Below, piece by piece: positions 4,581 through 47,245 of a DNA stretch of 64,000 nucleotides. The notes beneath the pieces are model-generated. The model saw nothing but the letters and a program-made list of their open reading frames with translations, did no database searches and was not told the DNA's origin. A program made the translations under genes and the position numbers. The stretch lies in the sequence record NC_019408.1. One strand, 5' to 3'. The first letter of the stretch is position 1; each line of letters begins with the position of its first letter.

Positions 4581-4620
4581 TGTCGTGAATCTTGACGTCC
4601 CTGGATGGTCGTGGCATCCA
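4581..4620 (+). promoter_or_regulatory. 17-bp motif TGTCGTGAATCTTGACG overlapping a -35 box; promoter for tail-tip genes
   Basis: TTGACG 4592-4597, 17-nt spacer, CATCCA 4615-4620. A reverse TTAACCAT lies at 4637-4644. Confidence 0.6.
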
Positions 4621-39405: not shown

Positions 39406-39474
39406 GGGATGTCATGGTTAACGAAGGGTGTCAAGATTCACGACATTGACTGTCGTGACGCACCACGCTACACA
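39406..39474. promoter_or_regulatory. Back-to-back divergent promoters sharing the 17-bp motif
   Basis: Minus strand: TTGACA, 17-nt spacer containing TTAACCAT, CATCCC. Plus strand: TTGACT 39446-39451, 17-nt spacer, TACACA 39469-39474. Motif at 39429-39445. Confidence 0.7.
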
Positions 39475-39480
39475 CCCTCG

Positions 39481-40133
39481 ACGAGGCGGTCTCCTGCTCC
39501 TAGCGCGCGCTCTCCAGCCTTTCCGAGGGCGATGCGCCGGACCTGCTGAGCAAGGGAATCCAGAGCGAGGCAGCGCTCTGCTCCCCAAAGAGTGGGCCAA
39601 GCGGTGCGGGCGGAAAGGCTCGGGGTCCGTGGCTCCATGCAATGCGCAGGAGAGACCGTGCTCCTTCTGACGCAGCGGGCGCCCGACGTTGCGGGTCGTG
39701 AGGCGAGGCCGGCCGAGATGATCAACGGCCTGGGGCGGGAGGGGCTTGACCTCTCCCGCATCCGCCTCTAGCGTCACCATCAATCAGGCGCAGCACTGCC
39801 TCACGATCGGACCATGTTCGGCTCCCGGTCCTGGAGCTTGGAAGCCTCACTCTGGAGCAGGACTGCCGCTGCGCCGGGGACGGTTTGGACGACGCACCCG
39901 TCCATGAGGCGAACGCCGGCCAAGACATGGCACGAGGCGTGACGGGGACCAGAGGTCCCACTCCATTCGCCGCGCCGGCGGCAGCAAAGCTCATTGAGCG
40001 GATGGTGGCACGGGCGCGAGCCCGATTTTGAGAGCCAGCGGAGAGCCACCTTCCTCCCTGGCCCGGCGACGACGAAAGCTGGGTGGCTGTAACCGCTCGT
40101 CTGAGGGATGCGTCCCCAAGATCATCAAGACGC
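39481..40133 (+). ncRNA. Candidate large ornate ncRNA (~650 nt), GOLLD/ROOL-class by size and context; family unverified
   Basis: Promoter immediately upstream, terminator downstream, no credible ORF. More than 10 helices of 6-10 bp, including crossing pairs. Confidence 0.7.
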
Positions 40134-40164
40134 AAAAGGCCCCGATCTCGCGATCGGGGCCTTT
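40134..40164. terminator. Bidirectional intrinsic terminator
   Basis: AAAAGGCCCCGATC-TCGC-GATCGGGGCCTTT between convergent RNA genes. Confidence 0.85.
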
Positions 40165-40171
40165 CAAATTC

Positions 40172-40260
40172 TGGAGCTACGGGAGGGACTCGAACCCTCA
40201 TAGGTGTCGCCACCAGCAGAGATTTGCAGTCCCGCGCCTAACCTCTCGGACCACCGTAGC
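40172..40260 (-). tRNA. tRNA-Cys(GCA) with a long variable arm, CCA encoded
   Basis: Acceptor GCTACGG/CCGTAGC, anticodon loop CT-GCA-AA, T arm GAGGG-TTCGAGT-CCCTC, U73, 18-nt variable region with GGTG-GCGA-CACC. Confidence 0.85.
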
Positions 40261-40440
40261 AAAACGGGACTGACGCCCGAAGGCCCAGCCCCGTTCCCGA
40301 CGACCCAAGGGAGTGCCGTAGCTGTCCCAAGGAGCACCGTGACGGCGTGGCAGGCGACTGAAGCCGTCAAGTCGAAGGGCTTCCGGCGCCGGTCACCCTA
40401 ACCTCCGGGCTCTTGCGAGCGCGAGTGAGGTCCTCCTACG
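40261..40440 (-). ncRNA. Structured ~180-nt leader or ncRNA co-transcribed with tRNA-Cys
   Basis: Minus-strand promoter TTGCGG, 17-nt spacer, TATAAG (-10 at 40452-40447). Hairpins with GCAA and UUCG tetraloops. Confidence 0.4.
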
Positions 40441-40542
40441 CCGATCCTTATAGCCGAGCCTTCACGCGTCCGCAACGAAAAATGTGTCGTGAGCGATGAC
40501 TTTTTCCTTGACACCTTCGATTAGGCTCTGGTAGAGAACAGG

Positions 40543-40945
40543 CATCGTTGTAATTCGGACAACGGAAACGGCGGCAAGACGGGGGTGCGATTCCCCCCGC
40601 CTCCACCACCACGAGCCCCTGGCGCTGGGAGTACGCGACTCCTGGGCAGGGAGTGTTACCCTGGCGGACCATTGCTGGCCCGAGCCAAAGGTAGCCGGGG
40701 GTTCTTGATGCTGGGGGCGATCAGCTTCGATTGGCGCATGTGACTGGAAGACGCAACGGTGGGTGACCTCCAGGCCAGCTTGCTGGTGATCGGGTCGAAG
40801 CAACAGAAATGTCGCTGCAAATGACAACGCTCCGTTCGCGGTGCGTGAAGCCATCGCCGCCTAATAAGCGGTAGAGGCGTGTCCCGGCGGACGCGCGTGT
40901 CACAAAAAGGCCCTGCATCTACGGACCGGGGCCAGTCCGCCACCC
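40543..40945 (+). ncRNA. ssrA: Two-piece (circularly permuted) tmRNA; tag peptide ANDNAPFAVREAIAA
   Basis: Acceptor piece has T arm GGGGG-TGCGATT-CCCCC and CGCCTCC-ACCA (40598-40608). Coding piece starts GGGGGCG (40713) and gives a G3:U70 pair. Tag reading frame 40817-40861 is followed by TAA TAA. Promoter TTGACA at 40508. End points are approximate. Confidence 0.92.
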
Positions 40946-41046
40946 ACCTTTCGCAGGCGGGGACCTAACTTCGGATGTCTGTCGGGCGATGGATGTTCAC
41001 CTTGGGTCCCCGTCTTCGAAAGGTGGTCGAAAGACCGTCTAAAAGA

Positions 41047-41125
41047 CGCGGGGTAGAGGAGTCCGGTTGTCCTCGTCTGGCTCATAACCAGAAGATCAGG
41101 GGTTCAAATCCCCTTCCCGCTCCCA
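41047..41125 (+). tRNA. tRNA-Met(CAU), initiator-like, CCA encoded
   Basis: CGCGGG start with a mismatched first pair, A11:U24, anticodon arm TCTGG-CTCATAA-CCAGA, TTCAAAT loop. Confidence 0.8.
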
Positions 41126-41383
41126 GGACCTGAACGCCGAGGGACTCCCAAAGAACGACGGCGTGACACGCTCGGAGAGAACGAGCACTGCAATCCGGGC
41201 TATGAGACCGTGATGTAGCGGACGCCGAAGCGAGAGCAGGCGTGACACCTGGAGAGACGGGACCAGTTTTCCAGGCCGCATGCCCGGCGCACAAGACCGC
41301 AGGCTTCGGCCGTAGGGCAGTGTCAGGGGATGAGGCTAGTCCCCGGCCCAAGGGCTAGGGCATGCGGCTTGGAAAGCTGGTTT
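41126..41383 (+). ncRNA. Candidate ~255-nt pseudoknotted ncRNA between two tRNAs
   Basis: 24-bp helix 41262-41285/41358-41381, duplicated ACGCC..GGCGTGACAC..GGAGAGA module, crossing pair GCACTGC/GCAGTGT. Confidence 0.6.
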
Positions 41384-41470
41384 GGTACGGTGGCTCGACA
41401 GGTAAGGCATCGGCCTCATAAGCCGAGGGACTAGCTCCCGATCCTGGTTCAAATCCAGGTCGTACCTCCA
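41384..41470 (+). tRNA. tRNA with CAU anticodon (Met or Ile2) and a long variable arm, CCA encoded
   Basis: Acceptor GGTACGG/TCGTACC, anticodon arm TCGGC-CTCATAA-GCCGA, variable arm GGGA-CTAGC-TCCC, T arm CCTGG-TTCAAAT-CCAGG, U73. Confidence 0.85.
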
Positions 41471-41477
41471 AAAAGCA

Positions 41478-41509
41478 GGCGGCCGTCGGGGCGACCCGGC
41501 GGCCGTTTT
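41478..41509 (+). terminator. Intrinsic terminator of the tmRNA/tRNA transcript
   Basis: GCGGCCGTCGGG-GCGA-CCCGGCGGCCGT followed by a T-tract. Confidence 0.75.
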
Positions 41510-41511
41510 GC

Positions 41512-41551
41512 TGTCGTGAATCTTGACACTCCGGGTTGAGCTAGGCATTAT
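41512..41551 (+). promoter_or_regulatory. 17-bp motif plus promoter of the cadherin-repeat gene
   Basis: TGTCGTGAATCTTGACA 41512-41528, 17-nt spacer, CATTAT. Confidence 0.7.
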
Positions 41552-47200: not shown

Positions 47201-47245
47201 TGTCAAGATTCATGACTTGACCCAAGGCGTTAACCATGGCACGGT
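47201..47245. promoter_or_regulatory. Divergent regulatory region with the 17-bp motif and TTAACCAT
   Basis: Minus-strand AGTCATGAATCTTGACA at 47217-47201. Plus-strand TTGACC at 47217. TTAACCAT at 47230-47237. Confidence 0.55.

Follow-up and report, generated by a model that had tools for sequence, protein, structure and literature searches.

Phage tRNA islands are known for large orphan RNAs of unknown function. Among these, GOLLD and ROOL (RF02032 and RF03087) are structured RNAs of phages and prophages that lie beside tRNA islands, and GOLLD forms cages (bioRxiv 10.1101/2024.12.08.627333). The sequence analysed here, a stretch of 64,000 nucleotides (nt) referred to as the window, matches the genome of Caulobacter phage CcrRogue, a phiCbK-like siphophage of 224 kb, with 100% identity (NC_019408; adding 62,000 to a window position gives that in the record). 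It contains an RNA island of 2.1 kb, flanked by the genes for a DNA methylase, read leftward, and for a cadherin-like protein, read rightward, in which a small RNA module recurs. The module is a genuine and uncatalogued element that joins the orphan structured RNAs of phages. As judged by sequence comparison, it is a conserved, folded, and duplicated RNA domain at the junctions between functional RNA units. GOLLD and ROOL are its closest known kind, also being orphan structured RNAs in phage tRNA islands, but the module is 45 to 60 nt rather than 400 to 800 nt and is repeated on several RNAs. To the large RNAs known from such islands it adds a small, sharply defined, and easily mutated element.

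Small stable RNAs that are cotranscribed with tRNAs and released by tRNA processing include the RNAs of the phage T4 tRNA cluster (species 1 and 2, rnaC/rnaD) and 3'ETS-leuZ of Escherichia coli. A relation of the island RNAs to these is not expected; the island RNAs share a pseudoknot-hairpin module and some have their own promoters. The intergenic RNase III sites of phage T7 are irregular duplexes of about 20 bp, cleavage of which stabilises the neighbouring RNAs. Like the module, these are conserved structured elements between the genes of phage operons, but the helices of the module are 3 to 7 bp and are interleaved as a pseudoknot. The cis-acting put RNAs of phage HK022 are two adjacent stem-loops with conserved unpaired bases, found just downstream of the early promoters at two sites per genome, without a pseudoknot. 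The module may be likened to them in its stem-loops with conserved unpaired bases, although it is pseudoknotted. The theta ribozymes, which resemble that of hepatitis delta virus (HDV), are small pseudoknotted RNAs that adjoin phage tRNA genes and have a role in trailer processing. The module differs from these in having no match to the HDV family and in the order of its helices. Type III antitoxin arrays (ToxI-like) have repeats of about 34 to 36 nt beside an endoribonuclease toxin gene, whereas the units that carry the module are 225 to 280 nt, have their own promoter boxes, and have no adjacent open reading frame (ORF).

A repeated pseudoknot-hairpin module

A preliminary description, made from the sequence alone, reported a module consisting of ACGCC, an insert, GGCGT, and GAC followed by a hairpin, once in a large RNA and twice in the RNA between two tRNAs. 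All three copies are present. A search of the window for ACGCC-N(8-30)-GGCGTGAC gave three matches (39913-39943, 41134-41167, and 41222-41246), all on the plus strand and all within the island, against a chance expectation of 0.24; none of 100 shuffled sequences reached three. Each match is followed by a hairpin with an AGAG-type loop.

The module is predicted to fold as an H-type pseudoknot (S1, L1, S2, L3), followed by GAC and then by a hairpin, H2, with AGAG in its loop. S1 is a helix of 2 to 6 variable bp between the nucleotides directly 5' of (R)A-ACGC and those directly 3' of ACGC(C), and emerged from the wider family described below. S2 is a near-invariant helix of ACGC(C) with (G)GCGU, L1 is (R)A, and L3 is variable, carrying GGCCGAGA...GACGAC in copies of the large-RNA type (m1). 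The consensus of the m1 type is yUGAsGC-GA-ACGCC-GGCCGARA-n3-GRC-GAC-nA-GGCGU-GAC, then the hairpin, with a loop of AGA or GAGAGnA.

Module m1 of CcrRogue (39905-39959, plus strand) contains TGAGGC, S1 (GGC 39908-39910 with GCC 39919-39921), S2 (ACGCC 39913-39917 with GGCGT 39936-39940), GAC (39941-39943), and H2 (39944-39959) with the loop AGA. It scores 72.8 bits against R1, a covariance model of the m1 type, and its fold of -23.8 kcal/mol (z -3.0) is accompanied by covariation. Module m2 (41132-41186, plus strand) starts 6 nt past the first tRNA-Met and has S2 at 41134-41138 and 41160-41164, then GAC and H2 (41170-41186) with the loop GAGAGAA (13.7 bits; -19.8 kcal/mol, z -2.9). Module m3 (41218-41261, plus strand; 21.9 bits) has S2 at 41222-41226 and 41239-41243, then GAC and H2 (41248-41261) with the loop GAGAGA. 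A degenerate copy is present upstream of m1 (39691-39751, plus strand; 17.9 bits, E 0.025), with a fold of -41.6 kcal/mol (z -3.7). The loop of its second hairpin (GCGGGAGG / CCTCTCCCGC) holds the -35 box of the promoter P2 described below, and this hairpin covaries between phages. The suggestion that the island RNAs are related is thus upheld, since a model built from modules of the large-RNA type alone recovers both copies between the tRNAs as well as the degenerate fourth. The common stem sequence, GAC linker, and hairpin loop indicate that the island RNAs carry a homologous, duplicated module.

Pairing was assessed in 31 distinct copies in a model-fitted alignment. Overall, 90% of the pairing cells are filled, against 74.5% in shuffles and 30 to 55% in slid controls, and two-sided changes are seen in 9 of the 12 pairs. 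H2 covaries freely. S2 is paired in 95% of its cells, and its variants ACGTC/GACGT and CGACC/GGTCG still pair. S1 of the m1 type in the phiCbK-like phages is short, at 2 to 4 bp, being GGC/GCC in Rogue and CGG/CCG in Kabachok. An alternative pseudoknot of the L3 loop (39926-39931) with an upstream CCAUG fits Rogue, phiCbK, and Colossus units 1 and 2 but fails in several others, and S1 is preferred. An apparent covariation of module columns 12 and 26 (C:G versus G:A) collapsed once Kabachok and Bajun were included. As in a kink-turn, in which tandem sheared G.A pairs adjoin a helix and a 3-nt bulge, there may be a role for the GA before ACGCC and the GA after GGCGU; there is no 3-nt bulge, and the 5' GA doubles as loop L1.

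Distribution of the module in phages and viral contigs

Conservation in orthologues, on which the preliminary description had been made to depend, is clear. The module is at orthologous sites in all phiCbK-like phages examined except Bertelyvirus, where R1 found nothing in two phages. It was present in all eight of the phiCbK-like loci first compared, with four copies in Colossus and five in PW, and its sites are conserved where the flanking RNA has diverged to about 70% identity or past recognition. Copies of the m1 type score 51 to 86 bits in Shapirovirus, Poindextervirus, Colossusvirus, the Brevundimonas phages Bajun and Kabachok, and the metagenomic viral contigs L035 and L290, the second and third copies in L290 scoring 35.9 and 20.3 bits. 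Copies of the m2, m3, and degenerate types score 10 to 24 bits.

The number of m1-type copies differs between phages: three in Colossus, four each in PW and Kabachok, six or seven in L035, three in L290, two in Bajun, and one plus the degenerate copy in Rogue and phiCbK. These counts, from one to seven in the relatives, point to spread of the module by duplication. BLAST of the m1 form against 50,697 phage genomes gave 38 records, all from Caulobacter or Brevundimonas phages; at the module site these have either no annotation or a spurious coding sequence (CDS), never an RNA. Neither gathering thresholds nor permissive E-values gave an Rfam 15 family for the module, be it in the window, in the relatives, or in the more distant contigs considered next. 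Scans of metagenome and genome contigs with ACGCCGGCYRARA-N-GCGTGAC gave chance matches only, with no true copy among the approximately 240 matches listed; since these scans reach only the matches listed, absence of the module from bacteria and metagenomes is not established.

A simpler form of the element occurs in unrelated phages. A scan of IMG/VR with the 3' half of the module only, GCGTGACGGNNNCCAGAGGNNNC, in which 17 bases are fixed, identified 19 contigs that are not phiCbK-like and range from 39 to 69% G+C. The inner triplets of H2, left free in the pattern, are complementary in 15 of the 19 (P 2e-16), with 8 different triplets. In 14 of these 15, (G)GCGU also has a potential pairing partner upstream, the strand (G/A)AACGC(C), and most have the S1 helix too. 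In 13 elements from outside the phiCbK-like phages, S1 runs have a mean of 4.15 bp, compared to 2.69 +/- 0.32 for shuffled partners (P<0.0002), and the S1 sequences are many and different. These unforced features suggest that the matches of this core element are genuine. Compensatory changes back all three helices, with thinner support for S2, which is mostly invariant. The module therefore has the two interleaved helices, each with compensatory change, that define an H-type pseudoknot. BLAST of the core element against complete phage genomes gave a single weak match, within a CDS of Pseudomonas phage Peetri, which was judged to be due to chance.

A compact fold of this kind brings to mind a new small self-cleaving ribozyme that would cut precursors at unit boundaries, in the way of the HDV-like theta ribozymes beside phage tRNAs. 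Small size, invariant nucleotides clustered at helix junctions, and sites in phage intergenic regions or next to tRNAs are the usual hallmarks and habitats of small ribozymes. The element, at 45 to 60 nt, has its invariant nucleotides at the helix junctions, has an L3 insert that ranges from 9 to 50 nt, and is found in phage intergenic regions and beside tRNAs. However, no match to the hammerhead, twister, twister-sister, pistol, hatchet, or HDV families was found at E-values up to 10 in the island, 5 in Colossus and L035, and 1 in seven of the core-element contigs, where Rfam matched no family at all. By inspection only, the order of the helices does not map onto the HDV fold. A ribozyme is considered quite unlikely.

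In the unrelated contigs, the core element is placed in the gap between co-directional ORFs, 8 to 40 nt past a stop codon and 5 to 32 nt before the next start codon. Alternatively, it is found 45 to 110 nt downstream of a tRNA, which in two of three cases is tRNA-Met(CAT). The proteins encoded downstream are diverse and of unknown function. Read from their sequences, the neighbours are replication and early genes, such as those for an SNF2 helicase, DNA polymerase I, and a ParB-methylase. Of the protein families encoded nearby, none occurs at more than 4 of 17 loci, and a search for a common neighbour that might be a candidate partner found none.

This distribution bears on the proposal, made in the preliminary description, that the island RNAs dock through the module. 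They would then assemble with one another much as GOLLD and ROOL multimerise. Several RNAs of a single island do share the module, palindromes occur in some of the L3 loops (CAUG in Rogue and BL10; GUAC in Colossus unit 3, PW unit 3, and L035 unit 4), and the cage-forming GOLLD is encoded in the same island of Shapirovirus and BL57. Orthologues, however, do not retain the palindromes, a search for a conserved complement to the module loops, including AGAG, found none, and in most of the unrelated contigs just one copy was detected, with ordinary genes on either side. That the core element is found in ordinary intergenic gaps far from the phiCbK-like phages argues for a generic role in cis over island-specific assembly, and the diversity of the downstream genes, with no common neighbour family, fits such a role. 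Docking is regarded as very improbable.

Transcript units and the junctions between them

The island is very probably a cluster of non-coding RNA genes transcribed from sigma-70-type promoters. On this view, it is made up of two tandem small RNA units (A and B), a minus-strand tRNA-Cys, and an operon of transfer-messenger RNA (tmRNA), tRNA-Met1, a spacer RNA, and tRNA-Met2, with the module as a homologous domain of about 45 to 60 nt. That the island is free of protein genes, as had been described, is borne out by a flat substitution phase, frame-shifting indels, the lack of ORF homology, and the failure of any ORF to reach a Pfam cut-off. In the alignment of Rogue with CcrBL10, at 90% identity, substitutions are concentrated in one codon phase in both flanking genes (p about 1e-6), and no part of the island has 3-periodic substitutions (p 0.3-0.97). 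The indels between the two islands are of 1 and 2 nt and shift the frame.

The hypothetical protein gp307 annotated in GenBank (39722-40135, minus strand) was rejected as a gene, having no conservation of reading frame, no codon bias, and no protein homologues. Similarity between the Rogue ORF and the ORF at the equivalent place in phiCbK is limited to ten residues, which are the translated module. Other ORFs in the island were likewise rejected, the best Pfam match being a sub-threshold one to DUF6883 (15.7 bits against a cut-off of 27). Other submitters have annotated differing ORFs in the same stretch, one of these across the tmRNA. The spurious CDS over RNA genes (39722-40135 of the window and L003 2663-3004, both on the minus strand) are gp307 in CcrRogue, BL64_126c, annotated as a 'DNA transfer protein', which covers the module, and BL64_127c, the 3' end of which overlaps the start of the tmRNA.

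Three promoter-like sequences of one common geometry are present on the plus strand, and their key bases are invariant in six phages in which the surrounding sequence is just 70% or so identical. P1 (39446-39474) is TTGACT, 17 nt, and TACACA, with no variation in the whole of the first box or in the TA of the second. P2 (39746-39774) is TTGACC, 17 nt, and TAGCGT, with CTTGA and CTA...T invariant, and a P2-like box is also found after the module in the tandem arrays of Colossus, PW, and L035. P3 (40508-40537) is TTGACA, 18 nt, and TAGAGA, and precedes the operon from tmRNA to tRNA-Met2. Its TTGACA is 37 to 40 nt from the tmRNA in seven relatives. The predicted terminator hairpin T1 (40135-40164), which precedes a short U run, is bidirectional, at -24.8 kcal/mol on the plus strand and -27.5 on the minus strand (z about -6), with a stem that is near-invariant in six phages. 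T2 (41474-41512, plus strand) is a stem at 41478-41505 followed by UUUU (-31.9 kcal/mol, z -5.2).

The count of three promoters and two terminators in the preliminary description is reasonable. The transcript map that went with it needs three corrections. Firstly, tRNA-Cys is on the minus strand and so lies outside the plus-strand transcripts, and T1 serves tRNA-Cys too. Secondly, the single large RNA is more likely to be two tandem units, given the conserved internal promoter P2 at 39746. Thirdly, there is no structured leader before the tmRNA, which starts right after P3, the promoter being about 38 nt upstream of its first base.

The supposed large RNA is therefore probably two tandem units, A and B, each driven by its own promoter. 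Unit A (39482-39775, plus strand) is a putative non-coding RNA of about 290 nt, both ends of which are predicted; it has no codon periodicity, has a 1-nt indel, contains the conserved blocks CGAGGCAGCG and GCCGAGA, and includes the degenerate module. Unit B (39782-39959, plus strand), the 5' end of which is likewise predicted, consists of a conserved small RNA body and module m1. It has orthologues with the same landmarks in eight phages and contigs: across the clade there is a promoter box, GCGCAGCACYGC, about 70 nt, GGACUGC, about 50 nt, and the module. In Rogue, the conserved GCGCAGCAC (39788-39796) can pair with GGACTGC (39860-39866). A 3' extension of unit B to the terminator (39960-40134, plus strand) has conserved blocks that align with phiCbK, Swift, Karma, and BL57, and is found only in lineages with an inverted tRNA-Cys.

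In the relatives, modules of the m1 type close tandem units that are 225 to 280 nt apart, and most units open with a TTGAC box right after the preceding H2. The last module is 2 to 12 nt upstream of a same-strand tRNA-Cys in Colossus, PW, L035, and L290. In both L035 and L290, the second tRNA in the tmRNA operon likewise has a module 10 nt ahead of it. Altogether, there are six cases with gaps of 2 to 12 nt between H2 and a tRNA. Some modules in L035 and PW instead precede a Shine-Dalgarno (SD) sequence and start codon.

Based on these positions, the module is tentatively proposed to act in cis as a boundary element, marking RNA ends and stabilising them. It is always found at junctions, namely those between a small RNA body and the next promoter, between a small RNA and a tRNA, and between tRNA-Met1 and the spacer; in unrelated phages, they are those between a stop codon and the next start codon. 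RNase P or another endonuclease would cut the precursor at the adjoining tRNA or in the short linker, leaving the compact fold at the new 3' end of the upstream RNA. In the mRNA settings, the fold would instead be near the 5' end of the downstream RNA. At either end it could block exonucleases and end-dependent attack by RNase E, and this would set the ends and lifetimes of the untranslated phage RNAs. A conserved partner, which may be an RNase, another protein, or the ribosome, would read the element in a sequence-specific manner, such a partner being implied by the near-invariant nucleotides of S2, GAC, and AGAG. In eukaryotes, the MALAT1-mascRNA transcript has a triple helix with an A-rich tract that protects its 3' end just upstream of a tRNA-like RNase P site. 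If the module acts as proposed, its junction with a tRNA would resemble this in function alone. As an account of the whole, anatomy and mechanism together, this is the best explanation, and its likelihood is put a little short of even.

Several points weigh against this account. Were the module just a stability hairpin, S2, GAC, and the loop would not have to be so strictly conserved. The terminator of Rogue and phiCbK comes only after another 175 nt or so of RNA beyond m1, which would reach a 3' end there only through an additional cut. The single-sequence fold of unit B is no better than that of shuffles (z -0.84). The conservation of the 17 bases outside the phiCbK-like phages is by construction, as the scan pattern fixed them, and the alignment behind the pairing statistics (A3) was fitted to the model, which favours pairing. 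A promoter and terminator scanner did not call P1 to P3 or the plus-strand terminators, having missed them, T1 and T2 included, because its criteria are strict. No expression or end-mapping data for the island were found in the literature, its promoters, transcript ends, and processing being predictions, and an RNA-seq study of phiCbK is silent on tRNAs and non-coding RNAs (PMC10688885). Datasets for phiCbK are listed in the PhageExpressionAtlas (PMC13478754). Finally, the count of G.U versus A.C pairs is 13 to 10, which alone is insufficient to fix the folded strand and was rejected as proof of it.

Since that count is not decisive, an element acting at the level of DNA has to be considered, such as a hairpin promoter, a single-strand origin, or a recombination site. 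Hairpins could form in single-stranded DNA, and the deletion that distinguishes Colossus from PW, which removes a 197-aa ORF and one unit body, ends within two module copies. Yet the orientation of the module is always that of the flanking tRNAs or ORFs, it sits inside units with their own conserved sigma-70-type promoters, and we know of no DNA process that needs the interleaved pairing of S1 and S2. A DNA-level element is barely credible on this evidence.

The tandem arrays, with one to seven copies in separately promoted units whose bodies evolve fast, could also be explained by a role in trans. In this case, the module would be a decoy or scaffold with high affinity for one protein, be it of the host or of the phage (an RNase, a tRNA-targeting defence nuclease, or an RNA chaperone), or for the 30S subunit through an exposed GAGG. 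Many copies, expressed from strong promoters, would titrate or recruit this partner, much as CsrB-type sponges or Y RNAs do. The strict conservation of loop and linker nucleotides alongside variable S1 and H2 stems is consistent with this. So are the SD-like GAGG and GGAG sequences within H2 loops, the GAGG of H2 being 9 to 10 nt ahead of a start codon in contigs L292 and L293. Against this, no protein family co-occurs with the element. Most of the unrelated contigs have one copy per locus in an ordinary intergenic gap (L293 has a second, weaker match), and single copies in such gaps suit a role in cis better than a decoy. The decoy is regarded as unlikely.

The location of the element directly upstream of tRNAs, or of SD sequences and start codons, raises the prospect of a regulatory leader. 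Such a leader would sense a ligand or factor, or would modify RNA polymerase, either for processive antitermination or to guard against Rho, and would in this way control the downstream tRNA, ORF, or unit. An untranslated island of 2 kb would be exposed to Rho, and invariant nucleotides at the junctions of a compact pseudoknot are a typical trait of small aptamers. However, the downstream genes lack a common function, unlike those of known riboswitch classes, and m1 is about 130 to 180 nt from its promoter, at the end rather than the start of a unit. Neither a conserved alternative pairing of terminator and antiterminator type nor a match to an Rfam riboswitch or leader family was found; riboswitches are recognised by an aptamer match and coherent downstream genes, and the element has neither. 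A leader is unlikely, and slightly more so than the decoy.

The boundary element may belong to a broader picture, which is speculative and for which the chance of being right is small. The pseudoknot-hairpin would represent a new class of RNA 'punctuation' in diverse phages, which sets where tRNAs, small RNAs, and mRNAs made from long precursors begin and end. It could do so as a self-cleaving ribozyme of a new type, or as a new fold that resists nucleases or directs RNases. In the phiCbK-like phages it would have been amplified to arrays of separately promoted small RNAs working with tmRNA and the long-arm tRNA-Cys and tRNA-Met. Whichever mechanism applies, an element amplified up to seven-fold in a model phage group, the phiCbK relatives of Caulobacter crescentus, and present in a simpler form in unrelated phages offers a direct way to test how untranslated phage RNAs are marked, processed, or protected. 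It likewise makes testable why phages carry tmRNA and long-arm tRNAs, and whether GOLLD shares the same pathway.

The tmRNA, tRNAs, and borders of the island

The tmRNA and three atypical tRNAs of the preliminary description are recovered by Rfam and ARAGORN, the tmRNA of the window being found by Rfam. The tmRNA is a two-piece, circularly permuted precursor (40546-41040, plus strand), with an Rfam match at 40546-40864 and a predicted 3' limit. It matches RF04321 with 88.2 bits, compared to a cut-off of 47. In the model alignment (GGGGGUGCGAUUCCCCCCGCCUCCACCA), the acceptor/T-arm piece ending in CCA precedes the coding piece. The tag frame (40814-40861) encodes AANDNAPFAVREAIAA, which has a hydrophobic end, and is followed by two stop codons (40862-40867). 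The score, the order of the pieces, and the tag with its stop are all as in permuted tmRNAs. The tag AANDNAPFAVREAIAA is common to CcrRogue, Bajun, L035, and L290. ARAGORN misses the tmRNA in the window and calls its orthologues. There is no tmRNA feature in the CcrRogue record, and the phiCbK genomics paper makes no mention of the tmRNA or of the island RNAs (PMC3556154).

The tRNA-Cys(GCA) (40172-40260, minus strand; ARAGORN and Rfam) is 89 nt, with a long variable arm, discriminator U73, and an encoded CCA. Directly upstream of it is a hairpin followed by UUU (40262-40296, minus strand; -24.3 kcal/mol, z -4.2), which is annotated as a terminator in CcrKarma. tRNA-Met1(CAT) (41047-41125, plus strand) is 79 nt and initiator-like, its D loop being enlarged and its 1:72 position mismatched, and is annotated as tRNA-fMet in CcrBL10. 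tRNA-Met2(CAT) (41384-41470, plus strand; ARAGORN and Rfam) is 87 nt, with a long variable arm and U73. The three score 35.8, 50.0, and 47.1 bits, respectively, against the RF00005 cut-off of 29. Long variable arms and U73 are unusual for tRNAs with GCA or CAT anticodons. tRNA-Met2 is 62 to 73% identical to tRNA-Cys and 54 to 59% identical to tRNA-Met1, so on sequence identity it is probably a paralogue of tRNA-Cys. Bertelyvirus has an ordinary 77-nt tRNA-Cys and tRNA-Met2 and also lacks the module. A strict link between the module and long-variable-arm tRNAs was considered and dropped; because a module precedes a 71-nt tRNA in L290, the association is a mere tendency.

The spacer between tRNA-Met1 and tRNA-Met2 (41126-41383) has a fold of -123.8 kcal/mol (z -5.7). 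From m3 to tRNA-Met2 it forms a long branched hairpin (41261-41383, plus strand), the apex of which holds GGGGATGAGGCTAGTCCCC and is conserved in five phage lineages and Bajun. A stretch of 28 nt around the hairpin GGGGAUGAGGCUAGUCCCC (41320-41347) is 100% identical to the intervening segment of the Bajun tmRNA (L047 3845-3872), where elsewhere Rogue and Bajun are about 70 to 75% identical. The loop word AUGAGGC of this hairpin also precedes modules m1 and m3. The spacer before tRNA-Met2 in Colossus (L008 4575-4740) has two T-arm-like hairpins and a weak match to the Y RNA-like YrlA (23 bits, E 0.45), and contig L301 has a 29-bit YrlA match adjoining a tRNA-Met and the core element. These are the only YrlA matches (RF02553, cut-off 69 bits) and both are away from the module. 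In L035 (2900-2995) there is a tRNA-like sequence about 55 nt past a module, with a D arm, an ACG anticodon loop, the T arm GUGGGUUCGAUCCCCAC, and the end GACGCCC-U-CCA, which is called by neither ARAGORN nor Rfam.

GOLLD is encoded on the minus strand of the orthologous island, between tRNA-Cys and the tmRNA, in phiCbK (L002 3664-4150), BL57 (L007 2869-3355), Swift (L005 2662-3148), and Karma (L006 2665-3151), with scores of 165 to 171 bits against RF02032. In these four phages, the tRNA embedded in it is annotated as Gly or Lys and GOLLD itself is unannotated. It is absent from Rogue, BL10, Colossus, PW, Bajun, BL9, and Kabachok. The model of the 3' domain, for which a match would be at least 150 bits, gave no match in the Rogue island at E-values up to 10, and ROOL (RF03087) has no match in the window or relatives. 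No literature linking GOLLD to Caulobacter phages was found. The tmRNA and GOLLD were previously missing from the database annotation of these islands, which is corrected here along with the removal of the spurious ORFs. The tmRNA and tRNAs, the boundary position of the module, and the presence of GOLLD in relatives make plausible the earlier suggestion of a phage RNA system tied to translation or to the protection of phage RNAs.

In Rogue, the region between the tRNA-Cys hairpin and P3 (40297-40505) is a spacer of unknown content without any Rfam match at E-values up to 10. Its greater part (40329-40505) is specific to the Rogue lineage and is at the place of the 1.15-kb GOLLD segment of phiCbK. 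These 209 nt were considered as a remnant of GOLLD and rejected, having no model match and no BLAST similarity to the phiCbK segment. In Bajun, about 1.2 kb from the minus-strand tRNA-Cys to the tmRNA (L047 2467-3700) has no annotated gene or Rfam match; as it is at the place of GOLLD in Shapirovirus, another large RNA may be encoded there. The tRNA-Cys segment (40172-40328 of the window, compared to L008 3409-3501 and L009 3063-3147) is inverted in Rogue, phiCbK, BL57, and Bajun, and has the opposite orientation in Colossus, PW, Kabachok, L035, and L290.

The borders of the island are formed by a promoter box of the phage. At the left border (39429-39446, minus strand), the recurrent box GTCGTGAATCTTGACA is followed by a TTAACCAT box and drives the leftward DNA methylase gene. 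The right border, P4 (41511-41551, plus strand), has the GTCGTGAATCTTGACA box at 41511-41528, inverted with respect to that of the left border, and CATTAT, and drives the rightward cadherin-like gene. There are about 10 other intergenic sites of GTCGTGAATCTTGACA within the window. It is probably the main promoter class of the phage, different from the plain TTGAC boxes inside the island. The sites, those at the borders included, are at 4592, 10734, 16570, 18673, 41523, 53236, and 56018 on the plus strand and at 47206, 39434, 32213, and 25051 on the minus strand. TTAACCAT, a frequent companion of GTCGTGAATCTTGACA, resembles a CtrA half-site.

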